Assembly (NCBI GenBank): GCA_965644495.1
Contig: CBFFSA010000010.1
Location: forward strand, 682,001-746,000
From: Perkinsela sp. CCAP 1560/9
Lineage: Eukaryota > Protista > Euglenozoa: Kinetoplastea
Reading direction: 5' to 3'
Length of the DNA: 64,000 nt
Shown: piece after piece, positions 3,118 through 42,018 of the stretch
Position numbering within the stretch: position 1 is the first letter of the stretch
Layout: the number at the start of each line of letters is the position of its first letter
Notes under the pieces: generated by a model
The model's database searches: none
What the model saw: the letters and a program-made list of their open reading frames with translations, nothing else
Told to the model about the DNA's origin: nothing
Translations under genes and position numbers: made by a program

Positions 3118-4028
3118 AGTTTTGGACCACCGGAGACCCTTTTTATTAGGCTCTTCGTTAAACGCGGTGGTTGTTTTCAACTTAGAAGTCACTCATGATG
3201 CGCGCTTTGCGTTGAAAACTACCGCTGCGTTTAACGAAGAGCCTAAAAAAGAAAATTTAGCCTGGAAAACGGAAAGATTATAGCCAAAAATAGCCGATTT
3301 TCGGGTAAAAATGGGGTGATTTTCGCGTATTTTTGCTCTCAGAGCACTAAATCCGACACTTGCGCGTGGGAAATCACTCGTAGGCATGAATGAAAGCCTA
3401 CCGAACGTATTGGGTAGAGAATGCGACTCCAACCATACCATTCTTTCGACACAAAAATGCCCCTTTAGGTCCGAAAAATACTTTTTCACCTTTTTTAGTC
3501 AAAAATGGGTCATTTTGAGGGGCGCACCACGGTTAGAAGAAGGGATACCTTGCGAAAACAACTGCGGAGAAAGCTAGTGTAGGTCCCAAACTATCAAAAT
3601 ACAATAGGGGAAACGATTTTGGAAAAATATTTTTTTGCCATTTTTTTCGCCAAGTTGAATTTTTTTTCAAATTTTTTTTTCCGAAAAAATCCGAACTTGG
3701 CGGACCCGTCCTGCGGATACGCGGGGGGGTCACCCCCGGGTAGGGGGGTGGAAAATGCGCGCCAAGACCCCGGCTACCCTTTCTGCGTTTTTTTTTCGAA
3801 AACTAATTTTTTCGAAAAAATCTGCTCGACCATGATCCCCCCCCTGGACCCCCCCCATGGACCCCCCATTTTTTTCAATTTTTTTTTTCAGTTTTGGCCC
3901 ACCGGAGCCCCCTTTTATATTTTTTTCTTCTATTATATTACTGTGTTCCTCTTTATATTTTCACTGTTTTTGTTCACTTTTTTTTCAATAATCGAGTGTA
4001 GAGCGGTAGTTTTACAACCACCGCAATA
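3118..4028 (+). mobile_element. Non-autonomous hairpin-ended repeat (putative Helitron/Helentron-type), most complete + strand copy
   Basis: Contains a ~105-bp palindrome (TAGGCTCTTCGTTAAACGCGG...GCGTTTAACGAAGAGCCTA), GGACCCCCC units and a terminal hairpin GCGGTAGTTTTACAACCACCGC. About 10 full or partial copies occur in the window. Confidence 0.7.
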
Positions 4029-9804: not shown

Positions 9805-10899
9805 ATGAATAAGTTAGGTATCTTACCCATGAATGTCATCTTACTTTTTGGTTTCTCTCTAGGCGATATTTTATCCTGCAATTCTATCATGTACGGCATT
9901 ACCAGAGAGCAACTCACAGATTTTTTTCTTGAGCTACAGAGAGCAAGTCCTCTTGTCGCCACGGACACTGATCTCAGACGCCTTAGCTTTTCCTTAGCTA
10001 TGTGCGCTTTGAACTGCACATGGGAACAACTGTATGATTTACAGCCCATGTGGATTGCTCCCGAAACTCCTCCTCTATCCATCAGGACTCTCCGCGATGA
10101 CTTTAGCCGCATCGCTGATCTTTGCCGCTCTCCTGCTTTAATGAATCCAAAACTTCGTTTCAAGCATGGGGTATCTTGGATGTCTGACGTGACATGTATG
10201 ATGGACGTCACGACAATCCCATGTCGTGCAAGGAAGCCGCGGGACATATGGGACGAAGCCTCTCAGGAAATGAGAAAAAAAGATGCGACCTACTCCGGCA
10301 AGCACAGGGAACACTGTTTTAAAGTGGAGTTCTGGCTTACGCTTGCCGGAGTCCCTATTTTTTTTCGCGGACCCGTTCCGGGCAGTGTACATGATGCGAA
10401 AATTTATAAAGAAAGAACCACGCACGGAACATTTCTTTTTGACCATCATGATGAAATGTTTTTGGCGGATCTAGGATACGTGGATTGCAACCACTGTTTT
10501 GTTCCATTCAAGGCACCACGCAAAGGTTGCCTTGATGAACACCAGGATCGGTTCAACCGCATGCATTCTTGGATTCGTTCAAGAATCGAGCGTTGTTTCG
10601 CTCATTTCGATAAATTTCGTTTTTGTCATGGAACGGATCACGATATTACGTGGGTAAAGGATGCCGTTCAGATTGTATCTGTTGCAGTGTATGGTTTGCT
10701 TGCATCAGAACCCCAGTACGACTTTGGTAGTGAAATAAATGTACACTTACAAAATATCGATGACTCATCTTTTTGTTGGTGTAGCAAAGGGTGTGGTTTA
10801 GTCAAACCGATTGATGAACGGAGGGATTGGCTCAAAGAACACATATACGATGTGGGATATGTTCCCAAGAAACCACAGCATGGATCAAAAACTAAATAA
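9805..10899 (+). CDS. DDE_Tnp_4 (Harbinger/ISL2EU/IS5-like) transposase
   Basis: Motifs MDVTTIP, YSGKHREHCFK, GSVHDAKI, LADLGY and RSRIERCF. A 45-bp direct duplication (9752..9796 / 9799..9843) spans the start. Confidence 0.88.
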   Translation: MNKLGILPMNVILLFGFSLGDILSCNSIMYGITREQLTDFFLELQRASPLVATDTDLRRLSFSLAMCALNCTWEQLYDLQPMWIAPETPPLSIRTLRDDFSRIADLCRSPALMNPKLRFKHGVSWMSDVTCMMDVTTIPCRARKPRDIWDEASQEMRKKDATYSGKHREHCFKVEFWLTLAGVPIFFRGPVPGSVHDAKIYKERTTHGTFLFDHHDEMFLADLGYVDCNHCFVPFKAPRKGCLDEHQDRFNRMHSWIRSRIERCFAHFDKFRFCHGTDHDITWVKDAVQIVSVAVYGLLASEPQYDFGSEINVHLQNIDDSSFCWCSKGCGLVKPIDERRDWLKEHIYDVGYVPKKPQHGSKTK

Positions 10900-11399
10900 A
10901 ATTAAGTATCTAGTCGTTTTCCATGAATTGCGAAATGTAAACTACGTAGTCATATCGTATACATGGCTTATGAATTTTTGTTATTATCGTATATTATGTA
11001 CACTATGTATGTCGCACATTATGATTTCTCCTTCGATCTAACTATTTTTCTCCTTCAATGTCTGCAGCTCCGACTAATTTCGCATGCTTTCAGAGGATTT
11101 TTTTTCAACCCGCGCCGAACCCGCACCGAACCCGCGACCCGCAGCCCCTCAGGTATGTAGTTTAAAAAAGGAGAATACCTAGTAAATGTTTTTTAGCTAG
11201 TAAAGTTCTACCTAGTAAAAGATTTTTTTGATGGACGACTTCTAAAGCAAATTTAGGCAAATTCAGGCAAATTTAGAAAGGTTTCAGCCCTCTAAACCTC
11301 CTTCTGGGAGTGGGTAAAAAGGTTTCCAAACACTCAAGTCAACAAATGGCAAAGAAAACTTGAGTCGTCAAAAAACATTTGAAGATCTACATGGCACCC

Positions 11400-11895
11400 G
11401 CACACTGATAACGCATAAAACTCGCACACTAATATTGCATAATGCACACTGATAATGCATATAGGCACACTGATAATGCATATAGGCACACTGATAATGC
11501 ATATAGGCACACTGATAATGCATAAAACTCGCACACTGATAATGCATAATGCACACTGATAATGCATAATGCACACTGATAATGCATAATACACACTGAT
11601 AATGCATATAGGCACACTGATAATGCATATAGGCACACTGATAATGCATATAGGCACACTGATAATGCATAGTAACTCGCACACTGATAATGCATAATGC
11701 ACACTGATAATGCATAATGCACACTGATAATGCATAATGCACACTGATAATGCATAATGCACACTGATAATGCATAATGCACACTGATAACGCATAATGC
11801 ACACTGATAATGCATAATGCACACTGATAATGCATAATGCACACTGATAATGCATAATGCACACTGATAACGCATAATGCACACTGATAATGCAT
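11400..11895. repeat. Tandem array of ~20-bp unit GCACACTGATAATGCATAAT (about 24 copies, with 21-24 bp variants)
   Basis: Directly visible; inverted copies at 13883..13927. Confidence 0.95.
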
Positions 11896-11951
11896 GAAGC
11901 CTATATTAACACAAAGACTGTTTTTTTTGATAATTTTTGTTGCATTTTAGT

Positions 11952-12953
11952 ATGAGTGAACCACGAAGTCAACGTATAGATTCAGAGGACCGCACCATGA
12001 TTGAGGTGCTTTACAATCAACAGAATTTCACCCAAGTCCAAATTGCTGCGAAATTGAATATGAATCAATCCTCTCTGAGCCGGAAACTCGCACGCGGACT
12101 TCGAAATGATACGTACAGTGCCAGGCGCGCTGAACGAGCAGCGAAGCAGTCCATGCTGAAACGCCAGCCGCGCCCATGCATGATTAAAGGAGAGATTAAA
12201 GACAAAGTCGTGTCTCTCCTACGCAGGCGCTTTAGCCCCCAGCAAATTACAGTAGTCTTGCGCAAAGAAGATGATATTAAAGTATCCCGAACGTCAATAT
12301 ACGGGTTTATCAAGCGGGATGATGGTCAACATGGGAACTTGGAGAGTTGTCTGCGCCGTGGAGGAAGACGTGGTCAACGTCGCCGTCGGGGAACCAACCG
12401 TACCGGTATTCCGAATCGCACCGACATTGAGGAGCGACCGAATATTGTTAACAATCGGGAGCGATACGGCGATTGGGAATGTGACCTTATAGAAGGCACA
12501 AGACACAGCGGATTCTTCCTCACCTTGGTTGAGCGAAAGAGTCGGTTCGGGATACTAAAGAAGCTCACATGCAAGAAATCGGCACTGGTCGCTGAAAACA
12601 TAACCAGTGCTCTTCAAGGTTTCTTGGTTCACTCCATAACATATGATAACGGAACCGAGTTTGCAAAACACGAGAAAGTAAATCAGTCGCTTAATTGCTC
12701 TTCGTATTTTTGTAAACCGTATGCAAGTTGGGAGAAGGGGGGTGTTGAAAATTTCAACGGCGTAGTACGAGATTTCTACCCGAAACGACGTTTGTTTAGT
12801 GACATCTCGCAGAAGGATCTTGACTCCGTTTCGCGGGATATAAATGCTCGACCAAAAGAAGTGCTCCAAGAACAATCGCCATCTGAGATCGTAGAAATTC
12901 TTCGGAAAACTCGCCCACAATTTTTGGTCGACAGTTCCCAAGAGTCCTCTTGA
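11952..12953 (+). CDS. IS30-family transposase (intact)
   Basis: N-terminal HTH (QIAAKLNMNQSSLSRKL), FSPQQI, GDWECDLIEG, SITYDNGTEF and PYASWEKGGVENFNG, with D(33)E spacing. The first ATG (11952) follows a T-rich tract ending in TTTTAG. Confidence 0.95.
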   Translation: MSEPRSQRIDSEDRTMIEVLYNQQNFTQVQIAAKLNMNQSSLSRKLARGLRNDTYSARRAERAAKQSMLKRQPRPCMIKGEIKDKVVSLLRRRFSPQQITVVLRKEDDIKVSRTSIYGFIKRDDGQHGNLESCLRRGGRRGQRRRRGTNRTGIPNRTDIEERPNIVNNRERYGDWECDLIEGTRHSGFFLTLVERKSRFGILKKLTCKKSALVAENITSALQGFLVHSITYDNGTEFAKHEKVNQSLNCSSYFCKPYASWEKGGVENFNGVVRDFYPKRRLFSDISQKDLDSVSRDINARPKEVLQEQSPSEIVEILRKTRPQFLVDSSQESS

Positions 12954-13237
12954 ATCTCCGAAGGACCCATCAGTCCCTTTCTCTAGCGCTTTTTATGTGC
13001 GTATTTCACTCTTCCATGTGCGTATTTCACTCTTTACGTGCGTATACAATTTTTAAACATGTTTGGACATCTACTCAACTCCAAGCTGGGCGGGTTCTTC
13101 TCTTCTGCATAAGATGTGACTCCCTTGAAAGCGGCATGGGTTACATAATAAATTCTTCCAATTTTGAGTTTTACCAACTTTCCTTCAACTGCATATTTCC
13201 GATTCGTAGAATGGGCTTTCCATTTCTATTTTACCTT

Positions 13238-13775
13238 GCAGACGGTTGGGCTTCGCAAATTACTTCCCACTAACGTCAGACGTTTTTGTCTTGCACACGG
13301 ATAAACAAGGTCTTGGCTTTATTAAGGGTGGGGTATGGTAGAATTGTTGGGCTTCACAAATGGGTAAACAAGATCTAGGTTCATTGGCCCAGCCGGCCCC
13401 TCCGTGCGTTCGGCCTCTCATTTCCCCCAAAACAACTACCACCTTTCGCGCGACCCCCGCTAAATAGGGGGGGAAGGTGGTAGTTGTGGGGTATGGAGGC
13501 CTCTCGCAACTCCGGGGCCTCACCGGGAACAAAGGTGAAATTATTAGCCGGACGGGTGAACAAGGTCTTGGCTTTATTACGGGTTGGGTATGGTGGAATT
13601 GTTGGGCTTCGCAAATTGCTTCCCACTAACGTCAGACGTTTTTATCTTGCAGACGGGTAAACAAGGTCTTGGCTTATTACGGGTTGGGTATGGTGGAATT
13701 GTCGGGCTTCGCAAATAGCTTCCCACTAACGTCAGACGTTGTTATCTTGCAGAAGGGTAAACAAGGTCTTGGCTT
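13238..13775. repeat. ~101-bp tandem repeats interrupted by a GC-rich hairpin (13385..13530)
   Basis: CAAGGTCTTGGCTT recurs at ~13306, 13561, 13662 and 13762. The same units occur at 29290..29640 and, reversed, at 22430..22528, 22955..23045 and 24621..24730. Confidence 0.85.
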
Positions 13776-14286
13776 CCGCCTTTTTTTCTAGAGTTTTTTT
13801 TCAAGGGCCTTTCTCCAAATTTTTTGAAGGGCTCAATTTTTTTTTGAAGGGCTCAATTTTTTTTCGAAGGGCTTGCTCAAAATATGCATTATCAGTGTGC
13901 GAGTTTTATGCATTATCAGTGTGCGAGTGGCCATCTTCAAAAACCTTTCTCCTTCGTGTACAAGAGTGAAACTCTCCACTTTTTCTTTCTCTTTCGTACT
14001 CTTTCTTCTATAAACAAATAGCAAAGTATTTTTGTCCCAAACACTTTGAAATGACGTGAAAAAAATAAAAACAAACTCCCAAAAATCACTTCCCTCCCCT
14101 CTACCCTAACCCTAACCCCCTGAACCCCCTTTTTCCTTTCTCCTTCTCCTCCCCCCCTCTTCCCCCCTCCCTACCCCCTCCTCAACGACACCACCCCCAC
14201 CCCCACCACCCCCAGCTCCCTTCTCTTAGTCCTTTTCGAAAACAACCTCTTGGCTTTGCGTAACCCCGTAGCCCCCCCTACCCCCC

Positions 14287-15399
14287 CTACCCCCTCCTCA
14301 ACGACACCACCCCCACCACCACCATCACCCCCACCACGACCACCACCCCCACCACCAGCACCACCCCGAGCGCCCTCCTCCTCCCCCTCCTCGAGAGCCT
14401 CTTCGCCCGCCGCAGCTCCCCGGTCCCCCTCTCCAGGTAGTCGTTGGTGTCCCGCACCCGCGAGACGACGTCCTCCACGTAGTCCCCCTGGTCGCTGAGG
14501 ACCGTGGAGAGGTCGTGGAAGAGGGCGTGGAGACTCCGCAGGGAGGCCTCGAGGGCGTGGACCTCGGTGCGGGTCCCGGAGAGCTCGGAGAGCTTGTGGA
14601 GGGACTGGGCGAAGAGCTGGGGGGGAGGGGCGTGGAGGAGGTGGTCCACGGGGAGGGGGGGGAGAGGGGGGGAGGGGTTGGGGTTGTGGTTATTGTTGTT
14701 GTTTGGGTTGTTGTTTGGGTTGTTTTGGGTTTCATAAAGTGGTAAAGTGGCTTCCGTGGAGGTTCTGGGGTGGGGTTGGGTTTTTGTGGTGGTGAACCAG
14801 GTACGGAAAGGGAAAGGGGAGTTTCCGGTTTTAGGGCTATTTTTGGGATTTGGTGTGGGGTTAGTGTTGTGGGGGGTTGGGTTGGGATGCTTTTCGGTTT
14901 TTTCGTTTCTGTTTTGGTTTTGGTTTTTATCGATTTCTTGTTGTCTCATTTTGTTTTCTTTTTCTTCGGCCACAAGTTTAGTTTTCAGTTGTCGTACCAA
15001 CTTTGCTTTTTGTTTACGATCCGCCTCAGTTTGGGTTTCATGGAAGGTGCGGAGACAATCAAGAAACTGACGGTGTAGAAAACGCTCCTGGTTTTCTCGA
15101 ATACGAGTCCGCGCGTCGCCGGGGGAATTCTCCGCTTTTGAAACACAAATTGCATGTTGTGAACGAAGTTGTTGTAGGTGCGTTCGGATGACGTCGCTTT
15201 GAGTTCGGATTTGCTCCTCAGTTTCTCGAATTTCTTCTCTTCTGTTTTCTGAGTCACCAGGAAGGGTAGAGGAGAGGGAAGAAGCGCTCTGGTGAAGGGA
15301 CTGGAGCTGGGAGAGAGGGTCCTGGAGCACCGAGAGCTCAGTTTGGAGTTGCTTCGCCAGTGAAAAGAAGGCGTCTTGTTCTGCGGTGACGTCTGGCAT
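14287..15399 (-). CDS. Syntaxin (Qa t-SNARE)
   Basis: Habc helices (RIRENQERFLHRQFLDCL), SNARE motif LEASLRSLHALFHDLSTVLSDQGDYVEDV with the zero-layer Q, and a C-terminal TM. First ATG at 15399. Confidence 0.88.
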   Translation of the reverse strand: MPDVTAEQDAFFSLAKQLQTELSVLQDPLSQLQSLHQSASSLSSTLPGDSENRREEIRETEEQIRTQSDVIRTHLQQLRSQHAICVSKAENSPGDARTRIRENQERFLHRQFLDCLRTFHETQTEADRKQKAKLVRQLKTKLVAEEKENKMRQQEIDKNQNQNRNEKTEKHPNPTPHNTNPTPNPKNSPKTGNSPFPFRTWFTTTKTQPHPRTSTEATLPLYETQNNPNNNPNNNNNHNPNPSPPLPPLPVDHLLHAPPPQLFAQSLHKLSELSGTRTEVHALEASLRSLHALFHDLSTVLSDQGDYVEDVVSRVRDTNDYLERGTGELRRAKRLSRRGRRRALGVVLVVGVVVVVGVMVVVGVVSLRRG

Positions 15400-16991
15400 G
15401 GGGAGTGGGAGGAGAGTGGGGTGTGTGTGATAAATCAACCCCTCAAGTGTGTCTCTGTGTGAATTTTCGGGGGCATTTTGGTGGGTCGGATCTTCTTCGT
15501 GAGAACTGCATTTTCGATTTTTTAACTAGTAGTATTACGAATATCTGAGTGGACAAAGAAACAAGAAAGTTTGATTTTTGGAAGCAAAGTGATTAAAACT
15601 TGTTTTACAGAGGGATACAAAGACACTACTCACACTGTACGTATGCGTAATCGCAAGTACGCCATCTTGTAAAGGACTTATAGGCACTGAGAAATATGTA
15701 TTTACGTGCACATCTGGCTCAAACATGAGCGTAGCTTTTATGCCTCAAGTCGTTATGGCTCGTCAGTTTTCCTTGCTGCGCTGAATTCCATAGATTATTT
15801 TTCTCGGATTCTTTTGTTTCGCTAGTAAAATAGGAGAACTCTTCTTCAATATCCGAGTACCCATTTCTCCTCGAAAAAAATATTACAATAGAGTCATCGT
15901 CCTCTTCTTCATTATAGTATGTTGCCCTTAGATGGCACCGTCACTTTTTGTGCATCATATATACTGCGCTATTGTATGTATCTGCTATAAAAGTGAAGAA
16001 CCAACACAACAGTAACCAAAGCCATGCCAAGGCAGACCACTGTGCTTGGACTTAACTGAATAGAACCACTCGCATCAGAGCAATCGCTATAGCGAAACAT
16101 GCTGTTGCTCTTGGTAAACCGCCCGGGTCGCTTCATGACGCAAAGTAGTAGTAAAGTAAAAACGATGGTTCGCAGAAATTTTGTGGAAAAAAAATATTTT
16201 TTTAGAGTAAAAAAGTTACATACTAGAGTAAGAAAGTTGCTGTTTTTGCTTTAATTGACTACAAAATTTTTAAAAACGTTTTTTTCTGTTTGCCCAAAAA
16301 TTCAATTACCGTGAATCGGTAATTCCCGTGACATTGTTACCGTGACATTGTAGAACTGCGTTGACCTTTTGGACAAAAACAACCCAAATTGTCCATAAAC
16401 TGATATATCGTTTTAAGAAAGAAAAACGCACCTTTTGGACGACTCGAGACCCTCTTCTTCGGAAGCGATTTGCAAACCTCAATTTGTCACATACAGTAAA
16501 CGTCACTATTCTCAGAATGCTCAGTTGTACGTCGACACAGAAAAAACGGCTTTTTTGTCGTTTTTCGTCACTATTCTCAGAATTGGTCTGTTGAACGTTG
16601 ACAGGCACTTTTTTATGAGGTCAAATCATAATTCTCATTTTTAAAAAAGAAAACGTTTCGCAAGAAAAATGTTAGCAGCGGAGCAACAGGCCGCTTTGGG
16701 TGCACAAAAATGACCCCCAGAGATCTCCCACCATCTCCTTGGTTTGCGGAGTCGCCGCTCTATCAGAAGAACACCGCGCAGTCAAACAGTACAAGTTTTC
16801 CTTTTGTGTATTAGCGTTTTGTTTTCAGAAAAACAAAGTTTCATGACTCGTAGTCACCTAAATCAGTGTTTTCTTTTCTTTTTTTGGTCTCACTAGGACA
16901 TTTGTGTGCCTTTCATGAATGGAAGAAGAGAAAGGACAACGATAAAAATGATCTCCAGTGATCCTCTGTGACCCCCATCTATCTCCACCTA

Positions 16992-20022: not shown

Positions 20023-20624
20023 ATTGAAGAGCATTTTATAAGATGCTCCCAACTAAGTTTGACTGCGAAACGCGGTCCTATAGATCGCTTTGTAAAAACT
20101 AGTCGGTCACAGAGGAACAATAAGACATAGGAACAATAATTTGTTTACACTTCAACAACGATGAGACTTATTTTCTACTTCAGACTATGTCTAAACTTTT
20201 CTCCTATGTTCTTCTCTTTGAATATTATAGCGTTAACGCTATAATATTATATATTATTTAAATAGCGATTTAAATAATATACCGTTCCCCGGGTTATATT
20301 GTACCCATATGATTTTTTTACTGCTTTTTCCACTTTTTACCCCCTTTTCGTCTATCTTAGCATTCAAATCAAATCAACAAACCTTGAATCACACCCCAAT
20401 CTTCACTCTCCTCTTCAAAGTCATCTTCTGTCTCTTCATTGTCGTTGTCTTCGTCCCTTTCTACTTCCTCCCTTTCTACTTCATCTTTTACGGACTTCAG
20501 AGCCAACAAAAGAGCGCGAAAGCGTTCTTGCCAGCTTGCGTTCTTAAAAAACAGCGTGTGCGATGAAACAACTTCATCAGCCTTATGCGGATGCATTGAG
20601 AGGGCACCCGCACATTTATAATGT

Positions 20625-21590
20625 TCTTTTTTAAGCTCTTCGTTAAACGCGGTGGTTGTTTTCAACTTAGAAGTCACTCATGCTGCGCGCTTCGCGTTGA
20701 AAACTACCGCTGCGTTTAACGAAGAGCCTAAAAAAGAAAATTTAGCCTGGAAAACGGAAAGATTATAGCCAAAAATAGCCGATTTTCGGGTAAAAATGGG
20801 GTGATTTTCGCGTATTTTTGCTCTCAGAGCACTAAATCCGACATTTGCGCGTGGGAAATCACTCGTAGGCATGAATGAAAGCCTGCCGAACGTATTGGGT
20901 AGAGAATGCGACTCCAACCACACCATTCTTTCGTCACAAAAATGCCCCTTCAGGTCCGAAAAATACTTTTTCACCTTTTTTAGTCAAAAATGGGTCATTT
21001 TGAGGGGCGCACCACGGTTTGAAGAAGTGATACCTTGAGAAAACAACTGCGTAGAAAGCTAGTGTAGGTCCCAAACTATCAAAATACAATAGGGGAAACG
21101 ATTTTGGAAAAATATTCTTTTTGTCATTTTTTTCGCCAAGTTGAATTTTTTTTCAAATTTTTTTTTCCGAAAATATCCGAACTTGGCGGACCCGTCATGC
21201 GGATACGCGGGGGGGTCACCCCCGGGTAGGGGGGTGGAAAATGCGCGCCAAGACCCCGGCTACCCTTTCTGCGGTTTTTTTTCGAAACTAATTTTTTCGA
21301 AAAATTTGCTCGACCATGACCCCCCGTGGACCTCCCCCTGGAACCCCCCCTGCACCCCCCCTGGACCCCCCCCCTGGACCCCGCCCATGGACCCCCCCTG
21401 GACCCCCCCCCTGGACCCCGCCCTGGACCCCCCATGGACCCCTCCCCTGGACCCTCCACCTGGACCCCGCCCTGGACCCCCCCCCTGGACTCCCCTCCCC
21501 CCCTGGACCCCCCCCTGGACCCCCCCCATGGACCCCCCCCCCTGGACCCCCCCCATGGACCCCCCATTTTTTTCAATTTTTTTTTTCAGT
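20625..21590 (+). mobile_element. Hairpin-ended repeat family copy with an expanded GGACCCCCC minisatellite (21315..21565)
   Basis: Near-identical to 3145..3890; followed by rearranged reverse copies extending to ~22330. Confidence 0.75.
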
Positions 21591-23144
21591 TATGGTTGGA
21601 GTCGCATTCTCTACCCAATACGTTCGTTAAGTTTTCATTCATGCCTACGAGTCATTTCCCACCCGCAAATATCAGATTTAGTGCTCTGAGAGCAAAAATA
21701 CGCAGAAATCACCCCATTTTTGCCAGAAAATCGGCTATTTTTGGCTATAATCTTTACGTTTTCTTCAGTTTTCCTGGCCCCTTTTTTCTTTTTTAGGCTC
21801 TTCGTTAAACGCGGTGGTAGTCTTCAACGCGAAGCTCGCAACATGTGTGACTTCTAAGTTGAAAACAACCACCGCGTATAACGAAGAAACAAAAAATTTG
21901 CGGTAGTTGCACATATTATAAATGTGCCGCTTAGTATGCATTATTGCGGTGGTTGTATAACTACCGCTGTACCCTCGAATATTGAAAAAAAAGTGAACAA
22001 AACAGTGAAAATATATAGAGGAACACGGTAATATAATAGAAGAAAAAAATGTAAAAGGGGGCTCCGGTGGTTCAAAAATGAAAAACAAATTGAAAAAAAT
22101 GGGGGGTCTAGGGGTGGGGTCCATGGGGGGGGACATACCGCACGAATTTTTTTTCGAATTTTTTGCTTTTTCGAAATCGAGCGCAGGGAAGTGGTAGAGT
22201 AGGCCGCGGCGATAATTTTCCACCCCCCCCCAGGGGGTACGCCCTCTGATACGCGCAGGAGGGGTCCGACAAGGTCAAAATTTCCGAATTTTTAGGGTGA
22301 CCAAAAAAAAAATTTGACCCAAAAAAAAAAAAAAAATTATTTTTCCAAAATCGACTCCTAAAACGTATTTTAAGAGTTTTGGACCTCAGTTACCATTCTA
22401 CGACGTTTGTTTCGACATATAACACGTGATATTGGTGAGACGCAATTTGCGAAGCCCAACAATTCCACCATGCCCAACCCCTAGCAAAGCGATGACCTTG
22501 TTTACCCGTCTGCAAGATAAAAATGTGTGCCCACTCGCACATTGATAATGCATAACGTGCCGCACATTGATAATGCATATAGCACATTGATAGTGCATAC
22601 TAAGCGGCACATTAATATTGCATAGTTACTGCACATTGATAATGCATATAGCACATTGATATTGCATACAGCACATTGATAATGCATACAGCACATTGAT
22701 AATGCATACAGCACATTGATGATGCATTATTTGGAAAATAAAGGTGTTTTCAAGAAATAGTGAACACTCGTCTCTGCTCCCGGTGAGGCCCCGGAGTTGC
22801 GAGAGGCCTCCATACCCCACAACTACCACCTTCCCCCCCTATTTAGCGGGGGTCGCGCGAGCGACCCCTGATAAATGGGGGGAAGGTGGTAGTTGTTTTG
22901 GGGAATATGAGAGGCCGAACGCACGGAGGGGCCGGCCGGGCCAGTGAACCCAGACACCATACCCAACCCCTAGCAAAGCCTAGACCTTGTTTACCCGTTT
23001 GCAAGACAAGAATGTGTGTCGTTAGTGGGAAGCAATTTGCGAAGTCGAAAGGCTGTGTGATATTAGTGTAACGAACATAAGTACATGCCCGTGTATATAA
23101 AGGACGCACATTTATGGATAAGAATCGGATGTCTTTGTCACTCT

Positions 23145-23650
23145 TATCAATGTGCTATATGCATTATCAATGTGCTATATGCATTATCAATGTGCTATAT
23201 GCATTATCAATGTGCTATATGCATTATCAATGTGCTATATGCATTATCAATGTGCTATATGCATTATCAATGTGCTATATGCATTATCAATGTGCTATAT
23301 GCATTATCAATGTGCTATATGCAATATCAATGTGCTATATGCATTATCAATGTGCTATATGCATTATCAATGTGCTATATGCATTATCAATGTGCTATAT
23401 GCATTATCAATGTGCTATATGCATTATCAATGTGCTATATGCAATATCAATGTGCTATATGCAATATCAATGTGCTATATGCATTATCAATGTGCTATAT
23501 GCAATATCAATGTGCTATATGCATTATCAATGTGCTATATGCATTATCAATGTGCTATATGCATTATCAATGTGCTATATGCATTATCAATGTGCTATAT
23601 GCATTATCAGTGTGCTATATGCATTATCAATGTGCTATATGCATTATCAA
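23145..23650. repeat. Tandem array of 20-bp TATCAATGTGCTATATGCAT (about 25 copies)
   Basis: Directly visible; inverted partner array at 22535..22730. Confidence 0.97.
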
Positions 23651-23667
23651 AGTGCCGCTTAGTATGC

Positions 23668-24600
23668 ATTGCGGTGGTTGTAAAACTACCGCTCTACACT
23701 CGATTATTGATAAAAAAGTGAACAAAAACAGTGAAAATATAAAGAGGAACACAGTAATATAATAGAAGAAAAAAATATAAAAGGGGGCTCCGGTGGTCCA
23801 AAACTGAAAATTTTTTTTGAAAAAAATGGGGGGTCCATGGGGGGGGTCCATGGGGGGGGTCCAGGGGGGGGGTCCAGGGGGGGGGTCCAGGGGGGGGGGG
23901 GCATGGTCGAGCAAATTTTTTCGAAAAAATTAGTTTTCGAAAAAAAACCGCAGAAAGGGTAGCCGGGGTCTTGGCGCGCATTTTCCACCCCCCTACCCGG
24001 GGTTGACCCCCCCGCGTATCCGCAGGACGGGTCCGCCAAGTTCGGAATTTTTCGGAAAAAATTTTTTGAAAAAAATTTCAACTTGGCGAAAAAAATGACA
24101 AAAAAAATATTTTTCCAAAATCGTTTCCCCTATTGTATTTTGATAGTTTGGGACCTACACTAGCTTTCTACGCAGTTGTTTTCGCAAGGTATCACTTCTT
24201 CGAACTGTGGTGCGCCCCTCAAAATGACCCATTTTTGACTAAAAAAGGTGAAAAAGTATTTTTCGGACCTAAAGGGGCATTTTTGTGTCGAAAGAATGGT
24301 ATGGTTGGAGTCGCATTCTCTACCCAATACGTTCGGTAGGCTTTCATTCATGCCTGCGAGTGATTTCCCACGCGCAAATGTCGGATTTAGTGCTCTGAGA
24401 GCAAAAATATGCGAAAATGACCCCATTTGTACCCGAAATTCGGCTATTTTTGGCTATAATCTTTCCGTTTTCCCGGCTAAATTTTCTTTTTTAGGCTCTT
24501 CGTTAAACGCGGCGGTAGTTTTCAACGCGAAGCGCGCAGCACGAGTGACTTCTAAGTTGAAAGCAACCACCGCGTTTAACGAAGAGCCTAAAAAAGAAAT
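23668..24600 (-). mobile_element. Full-length reverse copy of the hairpin-ended repeat family
   Basis: Reverse complement of ~3145..4026, inserted into the 20-bp array. Confidence 0.75.
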
Positions 24601-25910
24601 TTTATCAATGTGCGGGCGCCGTGTCGTTAGTGGGAAGCAATTTGCGAAGCCCAACAATTCCACCATGCCCAACCCCTAGCAGAGAGATGACCTTGTTTAC
24701 CCGTCTGCATGATAAAAATGTGTGTCGTTAGTTAAAAGGGGCATTTTTGTGACGAAAGAATGGTGTGGTTGGAGTCGCATTCTCTACCCAATACGTTCGG
24801 TAGGCTTCCATTCATCCCTACGAGTGATTTCCCACGCGCAAATGTCGGATTTAGTGCTCTGACAGCAAACATACGCGAAAATCACCCCTTTTTTACCCGA
24901 AAATCGGCTATTTTTGGCCATAATCTTTCCGTTTTCCAGGCTAAATTTTGCATAAGTAAAGGAATCTTTTTTATACTCTTCGTTAAAAGCGGCGGTAGTT
25001 TTCAACGCAAAGCGCGCAGCATGAGTGACTTCTAAGTTGAAAACAACCACTGCGTTTAACGAAGAGCATAAAAAAGATTCCTTTACTTATGTATTATTCC
25101 TTTACTTATGCAATATTCCTTTACTTATTCAATATTCGTTGACTTCCACCGCTATTTTCGCCCTCCCCAAATTGACCAAAAAATGCGAAATAGTAATTTT
25201 GGTACCCAAAGGGGTCTTTTTGTGTCGGAAGAATGGTGTGGTTGGAGCTGCATTCTCTACCCGTTACGCTCTGTGGCGTTGAATTCATGCGTACGAGTGA
25301 TTTCGCACACGCAAATATCGGATTTGGTGCTCTGAGAGCAAAAACGTCCAGAAATCGACTGTTTCTAATACAGTGGTTTCAAGATATCTTCTCTCCCTGC
25401 GGAATTTTGAGTTTTTTTGTCTGTTTTTTTCTCATTTTCGCAGCATTGGATAGATCTCGTTTCTCTTCTGAAGCGCTTTGCTGCCCTTTTTTTGTAGGGG
25501 CCCCCTGGTACCCCCTGGGTCCAAAACACATGGTTTTAGACTTCCTTTCAAGGTTCGTATTTATCAAAAATCTGGTTTTGGCTGTTTTTCGTGTCATCAT
25601 ATGAGCACTAGGGAGTCCCTATCCAAACTATCACAACATCGAGACTAAAACTATTCGAACAGTACATAATGCCCTAAATAGAGAGCAACGAGGCTCTTAT
25701 GGAAAAAATATCCAGTTGCTACATGCATCATCCCACCTCGATCGAAAAAGGTCCTTCGAGTCTCTTTGAAACCGCGCAAAACCGTGCTCAGACCGCCCGA
25801 AACCGAGTTGAAACAGCACCCGCAGCCCCTCACTTATCAAAACTGGATTTTCGAACAGGGAATTAAATGAGGCTCCATCAAAAATGTCTGCAAGTGCTAC
25901 GTTGCAAAAA

Positions 25911-27974: not shown

Positions 27975-28629
27975 GAACCACAGGCTGAGTTACCTCAACT
28001 CGGAGCGTACGACGCTCGCAATGCGCATTACGTTTGTTGAACGAAAATGCGTTGCTTCCACCACTTCCATCTCCAAAAAAAATATAAAGTTGATAAAAAA
28101 GGGGGGGAAAGTTACCATAAATTGTACAAGTTACCACAAATTGTACGCGAAAACTGGGTTTTCGAAAGTAGCCATAAAATGTACAAGTTACCCAAAAATG
28201 CATGAAAAAAAAAGAGAACGGGGAGGTGTTTTTCCTGGCACACGCACCCTTATAACGCATAAAACTCGCACCCTTATAATGCATAATGTAACCTGATAAT
28301 GTATAATGTAACCTGATAACGCATAATGTAACCCGATAATGTACCTGATAATGCATAATGTAACCGGATAATTGCGGTGGTTGTAAAACTACCGCTCTAC
28401 ACTCGATTGCGGTGGTTGTAAAACTACCGCTCTACACTCGATTATTGAAAAAAAAGTGAACAAAAACAGTGAAAATAAAAAGAGGAACAGAGTAATATAA
28501 TAGAAGAAAAAAATATAAAAGGGGGCTCCGGTGGACCAAAACTGAAAAAAAAATTGAAAAAAATGGGGGGTCCATGGGGGGGGTCCAGGGGGGCCCACTC
28601 GCACCCTTATCTGTCAGCATCGTTATCTC

Positions 28630-29140
28630 CCAGCATTGTTAACATCGGGAACGATACAGTGATTGGGAGTGTGATCTAATAGAAGGTACACGCCACAGTG
28701 GATACTTTCTTACCCTGGTTGAGCGCAAAAGTTGTTTCGGGATCCTGAAAAAGATATCATGCAAGAAATCGACTCTTGTAGCAGAGACTATCACCAGCGC
28801 CCTTCAAGGCTTTTTGGTACGGACACTCACATATGATAATGGAACGCAATTCGCGAAGCACGAGAGCGTAAATCGTTCCCTTAATTGCTCGTCGTACTTT
28901 TGTAAACGGTACGCGAGCTGGGAAAAGGGTGGTGTCGAAAATTTCAATGGCGTCGTCAGAGATTTCTACCCAAAGTCTCATCCTTTCAGTAATATATCCC
29001 AAGCAGACCTTGATTCCGTATCCAGCAATATCAATGCTCGACCGAAAGTGGTGCTCCAAGACCAGTCCCCATCTGAGTTTGTGCAAAACTTACGGAAAAT
29101 TCGACCGCAAATTCTCTTGGACAGCTCGCAGGAATCTTAA
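28630..29140 (+). pseudogene. 5'-truncated second IS30-family transposase
   Basis: RERYSDWECDLIEGTRHSG...YDNGTQF...WEKGGVENFNG; a diverged paralog of 11952..12953, followed by the same 101-bp repeats, hairpin (29647..29812) and inverted array. Confidence 0.9.
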
Positions 29141-30049
29141 ATCTCTTTTCGTGTGCGTGGGCTTCTTACTTCAAATATTGTGTCATAAAACACTAATTTC
29201 CTATGAAACTGTGCGGCCTTGTTTGTATTGGATATTTGCATTTCGTGTGCGTTCTTGCATTGAATGTCGTTTTCTTTACGTATATGGGCTTCAAAAGGTC
29301 TTGGCTTTATTACGGGTTGGGTATGGTGGAAAAGTTGGGCTCAGTCAGAAAAGTTGGGCTTCAGTCGTCTTGGCTTTGTAAGGGATTGGGTATGATGGAA
29401 AAATTGGGCTACGCAAATTGCTTCCCACTAACGACACACATTTTTGTCTTGCAGACGCGTAAACAAGGTCTTGGCTTTTCTAGGGGTTGGGTATGATGGA
29501 AAGGTTGGGCTTCGCAAATTGCTTCCCACTAACGACACACATTTGTGTCTCGCAGACGGGTAAACAAAGTCTTGGCTTTTCTAGGGGTCGGGTATGATGG
29601 AAAAGTTGAGCTTCGCAAATTGCTTCCCACTAACGTCAGACTCAGTGGCCCGGCCGGCCCCTCCGTGCGTTCGGCCTCTCATATTCCCCAAAACAACTAC
29701 CACCTTCCCCCCATTTATCAGGGGTCGCTCGCGCGACCCCGGCTAAATAGGGGGGGAAGGTGGTAGTTGTGGGATATGCAGGCCTCTCGCAACTCCGGGG
29801 CCTCACCGGGAGCAGGAATGAAATACTAGCGCTCTTTAACTTGTTTCTCCCCTCCACTTTTTTTCTTTTTAACTTATTTCCCCCCCTCCACTTTTTTTTC
29901 ATGGGGTCGATTTTTTTTCGAGGGGCGGTCACTTTTTTTTTGAGGGGCTCGCAAAAAATATGCATTATAAGGGTGCGAGTTTTATGCGTTATAAGGGTGC
30001 GAGTTTTTATGCATTATCAGTGGGACAATATGCATTATCAGTGGGACAA

Positions 30050-38190: not shown

Positions 38191-39978
38191 AGTACAATCC
38201 TTTCTGCCAAAACGTTTACACAATTAACAACCCGTATAGTAAAAAATGTCTCTAAACGTTTTATATACTCCCCCCCTCATTAATTTTCATAAATGACCCT
38301 AAACATTTTTCCTCAAAACTATATTTTTTAACGATAAAGATACAGTTTCTGTACCTTGTTGATTTTTTTATCATGACACGTTTTTCACGATCTCTACATG
38401 AGTATGTTCAGATTGTGAGACATACTTCGTCCCCCATCTCCCCCATCACCGTTTCTGCGAAAAGTGTGCTCAACAGAGCAAGAAACGTGGCCCCAGTGAT
38501 AAGAAATAGACCATAGCTCTCCTGGAGCATAGCATGAGAACACTGGCCTTCCAGATCCAGACTTTAAAAAGAAATCCTCCTTACCGCTGAGGCCTTCCAA
38601 CTCAAAAAGCCTTGTGCTGTCTGCAATAAACATTTTTCTCCATTCAAAATGAAACACACGAAGTGTTCTTCATGCCACTTTGGGTCCAGTAAACCGGCCA
38701 CGCCTCTCCCTTACAAGGCGCGAAGACCGGCCTCCCCGGCTAAAATAACCATGTTTCCTGAAGGTAAACCAGTCGTACTAAAGCCGGACAATCACCGCAC
38801 ATTAAAGAACTCCTAGACCATATTCTCGGGGCCCTTTGACCGAAGAGCGGAACCGCAGCTGGGTCTCAGAGTCGATGAAAGATTTTCAGGAATTATAATT
38901 TTCACCCAATCCTAACAGCTCCCCAATTCCGCGGTTCCAAAGCAGATCCTAGGCTCCTTGTTGTTGTTGGGATCCTTACAGATTCCTATGCGAGGAAGTC
39001 GTCGTCGCTACGGCAAAAAGGCAGAAGGCTCCGCCTTCTGCTTTTTGCCTTGCGCCTCCTCCTTCCTCTACAGTTTTGCAGATCGCAAATGTAACAGGTC
39101 TTAGCGTTGATCAAATCACACTCGCTGACGGGTCAACGAAGTAGAGACATAGCCGGCCGAATCTCTGCGTACGACCGGCGTTGAATGCGCTGTAATGGCC
39201 GTTGATAACGGTCGTCATACGACAGGAAAATGCTCTGCCGGCTCGCCCCGTATGAAACTGAAACATTACCTTCAGCAAGATTGTAGTACAGGACGAATCT
39301 GAGTGACAACCTCCCCCCCTATTTAACGGGGGTCGCGTGAGCGACCCCTGATAAATGGGGGGAAGGTGGTAGTTGTTTTGGGGAATATGAGAGGTCGAAC
39401 GCACGGAGGGGCCGGCCGGGCCAATAAACCCAGACCTTGTTTACCCGTCTGCGACATAAACTGGTGAATGCTGCAAAAAAAATTAAGTTGAGGTGTCAAA
39501 GAAATTCACTATTGTGATATATATTATAAATGTGCTATATGCATTATAAATGTGCTATATGCATTAGCAATGTGCAGCTTAATATGCATTATAAATGTCC
39601 GGGTGCCCTCTTGCAACTCCGGGGCCTCACCGGGAGCAAAAGTGAATTTATTTATTTCCATTTTTTGGCAACGTGAAAAACCTAAAATTTCCAGTCAACC
39701 TCAAATTTCGCGAAAACCAACGAAAAATGATCATACTTTTTAAGGGGTGAATTTTTTTAAGGGGTCGAAAAATTTCTACGGGCTCGAAAAAAATTTAAGA
39801 GCTCGATTTTTTTCCAACTTTTATGCCAGATAAAGGTGCAGAATTTATCCAATATAAAAGTGCAGCTTAATATATATGTAAAGGTGCATTATGCAATATA
39901 AAGGTGCAGATTAGTATGCAATATAAGTGGCCACTTTTTATGCCAGATAAAGGTGCGAGTGGGGTCCCCTAGAATAAT

Positions 39979-42018
39979 GGCCGTTGTGGCTTGCACTGGC
40001 TGGCACAAGTTGGCACTGGATTGTAGTGGACCCCCTGCAATTTGGCGTCTTTTTCGGGTCCACCCGGGTCCACTCGGGGTCACGGTGGGCCACTAGGGGC
40101 CATGGTGGGCCAAAGTGTAGCACTGATACTGGTCTTTGTTGATCATTTAGTATAAGTTTAGTTGATCAAATATGGATTGTTACTGCTATTTCTTAAACGT
40201 TGCTCCCTTGTGATGCAAAATGATAATCATTATTATTATTTTCTAGATTCGAACTCTCCACCTATTCAAATTTATTGTGATGGGAAAAATGTATTGTCCT
40301 CGCTGCAAGGTGGACCGCCACGTATCTTTGGGGGAACCTATACGGTGTGTAATGTGTGCATGCACCATTAAAAGTGATGCAAAAGATCCTTGCATCCAAT
40401 GTCAAAGGGTCTCGGTAATCATAGGAACGAACTACTGTCCTCTATGCAATGCTCCACAGGACTCGGAACGACTTCTGCCCAGTGCCATCTCTCTCTCTCT
40501 GCGGAAGCAATATGCGCATACTTCAACCACCCTCTTCACCCCGAAGAACGCAACTCCTTGCAAGAATTTCTTCGAAACATGTGGCGCATGTACGAAGGTG
40601 TGCGTGCGAACGAGAAAAAGAGACTACGCGACGATCAAGTAGCTTTGGTGGAAAGCTTTTTATCGACTTTGGGGGATGCAAACCTTGAAGTTGATCGAAA
40701 GTTTGTTCATCAAATTCAAGGTGATGTCAAGGATAAACTTTCGGCAACACTGGAAGCAAGTGAAGTCTAATCCCTTAAAGATGACCTTCTGCAACGTCGC
40801 ATCATCAAAGACCGAAAGACTGACAACTTCCACCTCTTCCACGTTGCGAGACCTCCGCCTCGTAGTTCCATCTCCGCAGAAGCTGAGGTTGAAATCGTAG
40901 AAATACGCGATACAAATGGAAGAAACGAGGTTAGCGGTCCGAAACGTCATCGGAGCGACAGTATTGCCTAAACCCGTTCTCCACATACTCTTCACTTTAA
41001 AAACAGTAAGTAAAGTAAAGCTGTAAGGCATGGAAAAGGAAGCATTGTAAGTGCAAGATAAGATTGTTCAAGCAAGTTTAAGATACAACAGTTTATGTAC
41101 ATTATGTTCAAGATATACAAATAATTTATATTGTGTATTAAAATGCTATTTCCTTGACACATGGTTTTAAAACGTATTGTTATTAACAAAGACTACATTG
41201 CTCTTCTGTTCTGTTCTTTTATCTTTATGGTGCCCTTTTCAGATACCTCGGCGCTGAGTAGTGGCTCGAATCCCGAACCTTTCTCTGTCCCTCCATCTGA
41301 ATCTGATGTGGAACCGGATGCACGTGAACCTGATGCCCCATATGAGATGAAGTATTCTGAGCTTTCTCTCTGTGGGCTAAGCCACCGAGTTCTTGCCCTG
41401 CTAAGGCATTTTTACCCTTTCGAGGAAATTTTTGCCAGCTTTCTTTTTTTACGATGCGGGGGTAGTTACGACATCACCTCTGAACTTATGCTGTTAAAAT
41501 TTGGCCCAGGATGGTCTGAACGCTCTTGTGCCGACAAAATACCGGCTTTTTTCAAGAAAATGTATCAGAATATGAAAGAATCTTGGTTGTCCCTTGACTC
41601 TGATATTCTTTTTCACGAAGCTAACACTGCATTTCCTTTCTGGGATAAAGATGTTACAGTGGCTTTGGGCACTGTCCTTCTTTTTGTTGATAGCTTACCT
41701 CGTTGTTACCAGCCAAAGTACGCTACGCACGTAGTTAAGGCTCTCGTGGCGTGTACAATGTCAGGATTTGTTTGCTTCACATCTGACACTTTGTATTGTG
41801 GAGCATCTTCGGATGCAGTTATTCAAGATCACAGCGGGGTCCTCAGTTTTTTGTCGAAATGCAATCTTCGCGCTCTTGCGGATGGGAGGTTTTATGACAG
41901 TCGCACTAATAGGCTGATACTGCCTCATTCAAAGGAGACTGTGCAAGTCTTGGTTGGCATGAGTTGGCATGAATTGGCACAAGTTGGCATGAATTGGCAT
42001 AAGTTGGCATGAGTAGCC
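39979..42018 (+). mobile_element. Two-gene element: double zinc-ribbon ORF (40277..40770, frameshifted) plus DDE_Tnp_4-like transposase (41161..42012, C-terminally truncated)
   Basis: Four CxxC pairs; LGTVLLF, YQPKY, CGASSD and LADGRFY motifs; TTGGCA repeats near both ends; weak AT|GGC...GCC|AT boundaries. Confidence 0.6.

Follow-up and report, generated by a model that had tools for sequence, protein, structure and literature searches.

Bacterial IS30 elements are about 1.0–1.25 kb long, carry a transposase gene only, end in terminal repeats of about 20–30 bp and duplicate 2–3 bp of their target. Links between prokaryotic insertion sequence families and eukaryotic transposons are established for IS630/Tc1, IS5/Harbinger, IS1595/Merlin, IS3/IS3EU and IS481/IS481EU. 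The eukaryotic transposons Ac/Ds, En/Spm and P have subterminal repeat arrays with multiple transposase-binding motifs, and ORF-less derivatives that keep the ends only. IS481EU and IS3EU are eukaryotic DNA transposon superfamilies tied to bacterial IS481 and IS3, and the papers on them make no mention of IS30 (PMC10045372; PMC13343696). A screen of 430 eukaryote genomes for every insertion sequence family found only scattered IS607 pieces and no IS30, and its authors ascribed the barrier between insertion sequences and eukaryotes to incompatibility at the level of transcription; an IS5-like element of a bdelloid rotifer is mentioned in the same paper (Gilbert and Cordaux 2013; PMC3673617). 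Our own literature search, which did not reach into Repbase and Dfam, turned up no account of IS30 elements in eukaryotes.

Here we describe an IS30-type element in a 64,000-nucleotide stretch of DNA, referred to throughout as the window. The segment from 11393 to 13931 is very probably an intact member of a DNA transposon family that derives from bacterial IS30, lives in a kinetoplastid's nuclear genome and goes back to one or two transfers from bacteria. The host can be identified as a kinetoplastid by eukaryotic neighbours together with a KMP-11 gene and a spliced-leader relic. The KMP-11 match (E 3.8e-43) lies on a contig that also bears IS30 copies (C1), the spliced-leader relic is found in the window at 262–301, and the ORFs of the window include syntaxin/SNARE, ZPR1, an APE-type LINE, and Tc1/Tc5-like and Harbinger-like sequences. 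This check for eukaryotic genes covered the window's contig (C10) and C1; the other copy-bearing contigs, including five with the remaining copies of the compact family D described below, were assigned by binning alone. A search for the paraflagellar rod family gave no match here, and none in the control genomes either.

The window element belongs to family A and measures 2,539 bp, of which 0.5 kb is a subterminal array and 0.9 kb consists of 3′ repeats (Table 1). Its ends were placed with the help of other copies, one of which (L034) is flanked by a CTT duplication and two of which (L033 and L042) share the 3′ end. The inverted ends are imperfect, 47 nt (11395–11441 against 13883–13929) being 91% complementary. 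The first-pass annotation had recognized the inverted ends, and it had also described the array of about 500 bp, a long hairpin, an inverted array and 101-bp repeats. All of these were recovered: the hairpin folds as DNA at about 13395–13518 with −42.6 kcal/mol (z −5.3), the inverted array at the 3′ end has two copies, and the repeat has a 100-bp unit, with a third, partial copy in addition to the 2.2 copies. The 3′ boundary of the element lies one base further in than first given, since the last C of that reading already belongs to the target duplication as its opening base. Because the terminal repeats consist of the same motif as the array, the 20-mer is a putative transposase-binding site, and the variant of the motif that occupies the array position differs in each sister family. 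Repeats of the T-rich TTTTTTGAAGGGCTCAATTT type are kept beside the right end in other copies.

Table 1. Coordinates of the IS30-type elements in the window and of their parts
Feature	Position	Strand	Basis
Family A element, autonomous in structure	11393..13931	+	Ends set by comparing copies
Target-site duplication CAT, left copy	11390..11392	.	Direct sequence reading
Target-site duplication CAT, right copy	13932..13934	.	Direct sequence reading
Left terminal inverted repeat, GGCACCC then two 20-24-mer units	11393..11441	+	
Right terminal inverted repeat, two 24-mer units and GAGTGGC	13883..13931	-	
Subterminal 20-mer GCACACTGATAATGCATAAT array, 23.9 direct copies	11400..11896	+	
T-rich (polypyrimidine) tract, AG-ended, adjoining the ATG	11918..11951	+	
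IS30-family transposase ORF, intact, 333 aa, DD33E	11952..12953	+	NF033563, alignment, bacterial relatives
21-bp tandem repeat, 2.7 copies, directly 3′ of the stop codon	12992..13045	+	
100-bp repeat, first diverged unit(s), including partial copy 13218-13317	13218..13361	+	Repeat families D1, D2
Hairpin module	13385..13525	+	Repeat copies genome-wide, fold
100-bp repeat units, two (2.2 copies)	13551..13775	+	
T-rich 20-22-bp repeats, TTTTTTGAAGGGCTCAATTT type, adjoining the right end	13794..13878	+	
Family B non-autonomous element, arrays and hairpin module, no ORF	22530..24620	-	GTG flanks 22527-22529, 24621-24623
933-bp high-copy repeat 'X', unrelated, nested within the family B terminal 20-mer	23671..24603	+	
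Family C element, 5′ half of transposase gene deleted, right end rearranged	28237..30046	+	

The idea that the element has 'modular ends' fared less well, for the modules are present but those on the 3′ side are copies of independent repeats. The hairpin module is a copy, with a deletion of about 22 nt, of a 163-bp palindromic repeat that is found also outside IS30-type elements and has at least 45 copies genome-wide (92–100% identity), many of them stand-alone or in tandem; the hairpin as a private functional module is weakened by this abundance. The hairpin copies, about 95–100% alike, are too similar to show covariation, a double change being seen in only 1 of 57 pairs. An Rfam search over the element, run with a lenient E-value threshold of 1 in place of the gathering scores, returned chance-level hairpin matches only. 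The 100-bp unit builds a satellite array on another contig (C19:68010-77782). Neither the hairpin nor the 100-bp repeat is private to the element, both being abundant independent repeats, and since much of the element's excess length consists of repeats that also live elsewhere in the genome, the 'modular ends' may represent cargo and not function.

Two sister elements lie in the same window. The transposase-less derivative reported earlier exists, as a family B element on the reverse strand, and its flanking duplication is GTG rather than the GT first read. The truncated second transposase also stands, as part of a family C element: the relic (28635–29145; C10:710640-711137) shows 81% identity and one TAA stop, and is followed at 29295–29814 by 3′ modules of the same kind as those of the window element.

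The earlier call of an intact DD33E transposase of the IS30 family is borne out in full. The ORF matches the NCBIfam IS30 transposase model NF033563 with 253.2 bits (cut-off 80, E 3.5e-75) over model positions 1–266 of 267. The catalytic residues are D178, D232 and E266, the last two separated by 33 residues (233–265); among 24 aligned sequences, which took in 18 bacterial IS30 proteins, D178 and D232 never vary, and E266 is kept in at least 90%. The clade I proteins, to which we return below, end in a Ser/acidic tail, VDSSQES, that the bacterial relatives are without. The basic patch RRGGRRGQRRRRG, found in the bacterial relatives too, could serve in nuclear import. The label 'eukaryote-adapted' that had been attached to the window element has indirect signs only in its favour.

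Insertion was accompanied by target duplications of 3 bp, which are perfect in 14 insertions: CAT (the window copy) and CTT in family A; GTG, AGA, GTC, GAC and CCC in family B; GAC in family C; and CCT, GAC, CTT, GGA, GAT and TAC in family D. The AGA insertion splits a repeat of which about 55 other copies run straight through with a single AGA. The rule holds for all paired copies examined except two doubtful pairs, L142 and L131, the latter in low-complexity DNA. The 2-bp duplication (AT) proposed at first for the window copy is in fact CAT on both sides, and 2 bp is rejected, as the last base of the element would then have to vary (C, T or G after GAGTGG-C). The sequencing runs examined showed no empty-site allele of the window copy. 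Terminal repeats are imperfect and about 27 bp long in family D, and composite in family A, with 47 nt in the window element.

Across the 21-Mb assembly, at least 76 sequences match the IS30 HMM, 55 of them above the cut-off and about 19 full length without stops; at the protein level there are 120 matches, on many contigs including that of the window. Two deep clades and no fewer than six families can be told apart among the IS30 matches. Counts of termini gave 39 for families A/B, against 0 with a reversed control pattern, and 13 for family D. Families A and C, with a dN/dS of about 0.08 at a dS of about 2, diverged under purifying selection, and short ORF-less elements made of array plus hairpin have transposed. 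Family D is the most compact form, 1,424 bp in which the IS30 ORF stands alone between inverted ends, and at least seven near-identical ORFs are intact. It includes copies 99.3–99.6% identical across the 1,424 bp, its copies show a dS of 0–0.04, and the flanks read for six of them showed perfect 3-bp duplications in all six. As these near-identical copies are intact, family D moved recently.

Protein comparison points to a bacterial source. The nearest relatives are bacterial IS30 transposases dominated by Verrucomicrobiota, at 40–49% identity over the full length (about 46% for the proteins nearest to the window transposase), and the nearest named ones are Akkermansiaceae, Puniceicoccaceae and Opitutales MAGs. 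A single clade with 99% support unites both eukaryotic clades and the Verrucomicrobiota-rich bacterial group and leaves out 22 further IS30 proteins from bacteria and archaea; the eukaryotic clades branch amid bacterial IS30 diversity. The direction as well as the number of transfers depends on this tree, in which the three lineages meet in a trichotomy, and an AU test did not reject a single eukaryotic clade (p 0.41), so that on these sequences one acquisition and two cannot be told apart. A viral vector was also considered, and a scan of viral contigs gave only one match, at 33%, and hence no lead. The tree, the at least 76 copies and the 3-bp duplications uphold the core proposal of the first-pass annotation, that a horizontally acquired IS30 became a resident eukaryotic family with non-autonomous derivatives.

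Among the alternatives, the one that survives best, though we consider it unlikely, is that the family is a dead fossil, taken up and amplified long ago and immobile now, with the window copy intact by chance. Most clade I copies are indeed broken by stops and deletions, in the family F transposase the catalytic E is replaced by K, and no run recorded as RNA holds the window stretch. Against this stand the intact window ORF with all its catalytic residues, a second family A copy 98% identical to it, the near-identical family D with its intact ORFs and perfect duplications, and, in runs X1 and X2, a derivative with a deletion (joint 11962 to 13588) that the examined loci do not contain.

A vertical origin is less probable still. 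Descent from early eukaryotes has been proposed for Tc1/mariner and IS630, and an ancient, vertically inherited eukaryotic superfamily, instead of a lineage-specific transfer, would fit the great depth of the two clades (41% identity, stems of 0.6 substitutions per site) and the fact that neither is nested within the sampled bacterial group. It sits poorly with the strongly supported grouping with one bacterial subgroup to the exclusion of other IS30 subgroups, and with the absence of eukaryotic relatives from the top 120 hits when a collection of 5.8 billion proteins was searched twice, and from Atlas clusters. The screen of 430 eukaryote genomes, in which IS607 alone was found, argues the same way (PMC3673617).

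Very improbable, in our view, is that the IS30 gene is captured cargo or domesticated and that another transposase, for example Harbinger, drives the mobile unit. A Harbinger-like ORF lies directly upstream of the window copy (9805–10899), with a syntaxin gene as the other flank. Harbinger elements also give 3-bp duplications, typically TWA. However, this DDE_Tnp_4-type ORF lies outside the duplication-bounded element and the duplications (CAT, CTT, GTG, AGA and others) are not TWA, which speaks against membership of PIF/Harbinger; the end motif changes along with the transposase, family by family; and family D has no content besides an IS30 ORF between its ends.

Finally, the chimeric join with bacterial DNA against which the first-pass annotation had warned is contradicted. 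Contigs of four independent runs extend across the two junctions of the window copy; they are short Logan contigs, and no single record covers the entire element. The window copy is therefore not a chimeric join. Although the closest proteins from outside were found in a metagenome-style assembly made from the same sample (ERZ24900291) and the transposase shares 46% identity with bacterial IS30 proteins, an origin in a co-sequenced bacterium (prey or symbiont), by contamination or by misassembly into eukaryotic contigs, is hardly credible given these bridged junctions, the location between the Harbinger-like ORF and the syntaxin gene, copies of graded divergence on many contigs of 0.2–4 Mb, the mutual nesting of IS30-type elements and an abundant host repeat, each being found inside the other, a closest bacterial protein of at most 49% identity in the 5.8-billion-protein collection, and a GC3 of the IS30-type ORFs (42–49%) like that of resident eukaryotic TEs (43%) rather than host genes (66–70%).

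We therefore return to the favoured reading, a bacterial IS30 that settled in a kinetoplastid nucleus. Under this model, an IS30 element would have been acquired once or twice from bacteria whose nearest sampled relatives are mostly aquatic Verrucomicrobiota, and would have diversified within the lineage into the two clades and their families, with end motifs of their own and ORF-less derivatives. The N-terminal helix-turn-helix region would bind the 20-mers, and the DDE domain would cut and join the ends as in bacterial IS30, with a staggered 3-bp cut of the target. The cut-and-paste mode named in the first-pass annotation is conjectural. Bacterial IS30 transposes through joined-end intermediates, either circles or dimers; abutted family D ends, as a trace of such forms, were absent from the assembly, in which transient forms would not register. 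Kinetoplastids transcribe their genes polycistronically and produce mRNAs via spliced-leader trans-splicing. The transposase gene may thus be expressed without a promoter of its own, by polycistronic transcription and trans-splicing at the pyrimidine tract 5′ of the ATG, and the T-rich tract of the window element is a candidate spliced-leader trans-splice acceptor. Within clade I, families A, C, F and G have a comparable tract in front of the ATG, with no AG between the two in families C and G. Whether these elements constitute an uncatalogued superfamily, 'IS30EU', founded by a bacteria-to-kinetoplastid transfer, still active and perhaps owing its success to polycistronic transcription and trans-splicing, is in our judgement evenly balanced.

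The IS30 family was previously known from prokaryotes only, and colonizations of eukaryotes by bacterial transposons have very rarely been documented. IS30 would add another link between a prokaryotic insertion sequence family and a group of eukaryotic transposons. In this genome, a DDE insertion sequence did not just land; it radiated into several families, each with an end motif of its own, and has non-autonomous derivatives and recent movers. Hosts with trans-splicing and polycistronic transcription may be permissive to promoter-less bacterial genes, and if the IS30EU reading is true, promoter-independent polycistronic transcription and trans-splicing in the host would remove the supposed transcriptional barrier against bacterial insertion sequences. 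The compact 1.4-kb family D could serve as a genetic tool for kinetoplastids.

Set beside known systems, the elements share with bacterial IS30 (ISfinder; NF033563) a single ORF, N-terminal helix-turn-helix regions, the DD33E signature, terminal inverted repeats and a 3-bp duplication. They differ in living in a eukaryote nucleus, in having the inner end motif multiplied into arrays of up to 25 copies, in the tail of the clade I proteins, and in their repeat cargo and ORF-less derivative families; the window element, at 2.5 kb, exceeds the bacterial size more than twofold, whereas family D is close to it. Like IS481EU and IS3EU, they encode an integrase-like DDE transposase clearly related to one prokaryotic family, which here is IS30 (253 bits) and not IS481 (62 bits with model NF033577, cut-off 224), and there was no IS3 match. 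Like the IS607-like and rotifer IS5-like cases, they represent prokaryotic insertion sequence families in eukaryotic nuclear genomes after horizontal transfer; the IS607-like cases, however, are mostly few, fragmentary and of serine-recombinase type, in contrast to a DDE insertion sequence with several families, dozens of copies and non-autonomous derivatives. With Ac/Ds, En/Spm and P they have in common motif arrays within the ends, although binding of the 20-mer is putative here, and short ORF-less derivatives, built around transposases of unrelated superfamilies.

The window carries an IS30-type transposon, family A of this genome, whose reading frame matched the NCBIfam IS30-family transposase model over essentially its whole length (E 3.5e-75, 253 bits against a cut-off of 80). 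The IS481 and IS21 models scored far under their cut-offs, and Pfam gave only weak HTH_32 and rve signals. When the window protein was aligned with five other copies from the genome and 18 bacterial IS30 proteins, D178 and D232 were invariant and E266 nearly so, with 33 residues between the latter two, bearing out the intact DD33E transposase described in the first-pass annotation. The alignment also revealed an arginine-rich patch (residues 140-156) common to the bacterial relatives, which could act as a nuclear import signal without new evolution, and a C-terminal Ser/acidic tail present in the proteins of clade I, the clade of family A, and absent from the bacterial proteins. The ORF composition resembles that of resident transposable elements rather than host genes.

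The ends of the element were redefined by setting the window copy against further copies in this assembly. The base following GAGTGGC differs among copies (C, T or G), and the same three bases border the interval from GGCACCC to GAGTGGC on each side: CAT for the window copy, CTT for a deletion derivative carried by contig C5. Duplications of 3 bp also flank family B (GTG in the window; AGA, GTC, GAC and CCC at other loci), family C (GAC) and family D, in all six copies examined (CCT, GAC, CTT, GGA, GAT and TAC). The variable terminal base and the identical 3-bp flanks across families therefore set the element at 11393-13931 with a 3-bp duplication, correcting the 2-bp duplication (AT) and 3′ end first proposed; the derivative placed at 22529-24620 with a GT duplication is present, but its bounds are 22530-24620 and its duplication GTG. 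IS30 elements duplicate 2-3 bp of target (ISfinder), a range that includes the 3 bp found here. The AGA insertion of family B breaks an unrelated high-copy repeat at its end; some 55 further copies of that repeat are uninterrupted with a single AGA and serve as a many-fold empty site. Two more candidate end pairs, at loci L131 (in low-complexity DNA) and L142, are mismatched at their 3-bp flanks and may not be true pairs.

Features of the window element, its neighbours and associated repeats (window positions unless a contig of the assembly, G000, is named)
Feature	Position	Strand	Details
IS30-family transposase ORF	11952-12953	+	333 residues counted from first ATG
Inverted ends of element			47 nt each, 91% complementary
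20-mer array of element			496 bp, about 24 direct copies
100-bp repeat of element			two copies and a fraction
Imperfect hairpin of element			stable; fold z-score -5.3
End motif at 3′ terminus			two inverted copies
Hairpin repeat, window copy	13385-13525
Hairpin repeat elsewhere	G000:C11:157813-158573; C8:197985-198147		first is tandem
Repeat X, high-copy	23671-24603; also 3142-4027, 20624-21397 and others		~930 bp
Further IS30-type termini	20603; 39538-39607		another motif variant (GCACATTTATAATGCATA); terminus at 39607 abuts right arm of hairpin repeat
Harbinger-type (DDE_Tnp_4) ORFs	9805-10899; 41161-42012		first intact (364 aa), directly left of IS30 element
Syntaxin/SNARE gene	14287-15438	-	long N-, T-, P-rich low-complexity insert between syntaxin and SNARE domains
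APE-type LINE ORF	50809-54582	-	1,257 aa, intact-looking; endonuclease, reverse transcriptase and RNase H domains

Searched at the protein level, the whole assembly gave 120 matches on many contigs, at 100% to 28% identity, and the IS30 model returned 76 (E < 1e-10), 55 of them over the curated cut-off and about 19 spanning the whole model without a stop. The intact proteins form two deep clades. Clade I comprises family A (two intact copies, 98% identical), C (74%), a relative of C (67%), F and G (56-60%), as well as the ORF-less family B; clade II comprises D and E, about 41% identical to A. Every clade I family carries an array of its own motif variant at the same position between left end and ATG, as would be expected if the ends evolve in step with the DNA-binding domain. 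The compact family D measures 1,424 bp, with imperfect ends of ~27 bp and a 315-aa ORF; at least seven of its ORFs are intact in the genome, 13 right termini are present, and six aligned copies are 97.8-99.6% identical across their full length. One family F copy (L007, G000:C20:191585-192505) has an open 340-aa frame with lysine for the catalytic glutamate (GGVKRFNG), and may be an inactive or re-purposed transposase.

The 110 contigs of the assembly total 21 Mb; that of the window, C10, is 767 kb long. A syntaxin gene with a SNARE domain directly adjoins the element on its right, and other ORFs of the window encode ZPR1, an APE-type LINE with RNase H, Tc1/Tc5-like transposase domains and two Harbinger-like proteins; a spliced-leader-like relic lies at 262-301. 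Contig C1, which also bears IS30 copies, encodes the kinetoplastid membrane protein KMP-11 (E 3.8e-43; no match in 14 control genomes). Eukaryotic genes were examined on these two contigs, the other copy-bearing contigs being assigned to the organism by assembly binning. Both junctions are crossed, with no differences at the joins, by short contigs of four public runs belonging to one study (left, 11264-11421 and 11269-11463; right, 13902-14194 and 13902-14229), so that the check for a chimeric join with bacterial DNA found none. Nesting runs both ways between IS30-type elements and the host repeat X, each occurring inside the other. Together, the copies on many contigs, the eukaryotic neighbours, the bridged junctions and this mutual nesting led us to reject a contaminant or chimera. 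Separately, 1,026 bp of the window (10478-11503) recur inverted ~90 kb away at 99.3% identity (L039, G000:C10:603598-604623); this duplicate takes in the left flank, with part of the Harbinger-like ORF, plus the element's first 111 bp, and its end within the 20-mer array suggests recombination or aborted transposition.

The closest outside proteins in a collection of 5.8 billion were bacterial IS30 transposases (46% identity for family A, up to 49% for D), mostly on metagenome contigs of 1.0-1.5 kb; the sole closer matches came from a metagenome-style assembly containing the same locus. Among species genomes, the best matches were to Akkermansiaceae, Puniceicoccaceae, Opitutales and other Verrucomicrobiota MAGs (40-46%), followed by Neisseria, Bacteroidota and others (34-37%). 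Atlas clusters were all bacterial, and no viral relative was found. Maximum-likelihood analysis, with 22 distant IS30 proteins as the root, joined both eukaryotic clades and a Verrucomicrobiota-rich group into one clade with 99% support, within which the three-way order was not fixed; a tree holding all eukaryotic sequences together was not rejected (AU p 0.41). This nesting inside bacterial diversity argues for transfer from bacteria to the eukaryote, with one or two transfers possible, and together with the genome-wide copies it upholds the core of the first-pass interpretation, that a horizontally acquired IS30 is resident in a eukaryote.

Families A and C differ by a dN of 0.16 and a dS of about 2; the resulting dN/dS of about 0.08 implies purifying selection on the transposase during their divergence, which, as they share one element architecture, occurred in the eukaryotic lineage. 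The dS among family D copies (0-0.04) indicates recent movement. Non-autonomous elements, as originally proposed, also exist: an internal deletion of A from 12053 to 13284 was matched by eye to the C5 copy, and a second, joining 11962 to 13588 with GCGT between, occurs only in contigs of runs X1 and X2 and was not seen among the assembly loci examined. Family B consists of two arrays flanking the hairpin module, and its insertions are independent.

The proposed ends, 20-mer array, ~100-bp repeats, hairpin and inverted array were all found, and the terminal repeats are built from the same motif as the 20-mer array. The 'modular ends' need qualification. The hairpin module is ~95-100% identical across families A, B, C and G, and transposase identity among these families is only 56-74%. 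It belongs to a 163-bp palindromic repeat without an Rfam match, with at least 45 genome copies (92-100% identity) within IS30-type elements, in tandem or alone, many with no IS30-type sequence nearby. The 100-bp unit forms a ~10-kb satellite array (G000:C19:68010-77782), and read depth across both modules far exceeds that of the rest of the element. The modules are thus independent, abundant repeat families carried in the elements. They always lie downstream of the ORF and share one orientation; they may have undergone a single capture and then homogenisation, may insert site-specifically, or may serve the element. Repeat X, which terminates in an A-rich tail (...GCCTAAAAAAGAAAA) and may be a retroposon, interrupts the terminal 20-mer in IS30-type elements in at least six places, each time at the same position immediately ahead of ATCAATGTGCG, which suggests a preferred target.

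Direct evidence exists for a DDE enzyme of IS30 type whose catalytic residues are intact, for inverted ends of its own, for 3-bp duplications and for many independent insertions. By analogy with the bacterial family, the N-terminal helix-turn-helix region would recognise the inner part of the ends, multiplied here into arrays, and the DDE domain would join the element's ends to target DNA cut at a 3-bp stagger. Transposition of bacterial IS30 passes through joined-end intermediates, a route that may also apply here; the assembly contains no fixed joined ends. In kinetoplastids, transcription runs through long polycistronic units, from which each mRNA is released by spliced-leader trans-splicing at a pyrimidine tract and a following AG. 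A T-rich tract directly precedes the ATG in all four ORF-bearing clade I families, with AG two bases before the ATG in the window copy and no AG there in families C and G. Trans-splicing at this candidate acceptor would allow a promoter-less bacterial gene to be expressed wherever it inserted within a transcription unit, and so would address the transcriptional barrier to insertion sequences in eukaryotes discussed in PMC3673617.

Overall, the first observation is confirmed once its end and duplication are corrected, and its interpretation is supported in its core. Full-text literature searches turned up no account of IS30-type elements in eukaryotes; an earlier entry in Repbase or Dfam is possible. 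A 2013 screen of 430 eukaryote genomes recovered IS607 only (PMC3673617), and the known IS-to-eukaryote links given in the IS481EU paper (PMC10045372) and a 2026 survey (PMC13343696) do not include IS30. We rate the element, of high interest to transposon and kinetoplastid specialists, as a case of an already known IS family occurring in a new domain of life with its end architecture expanded.
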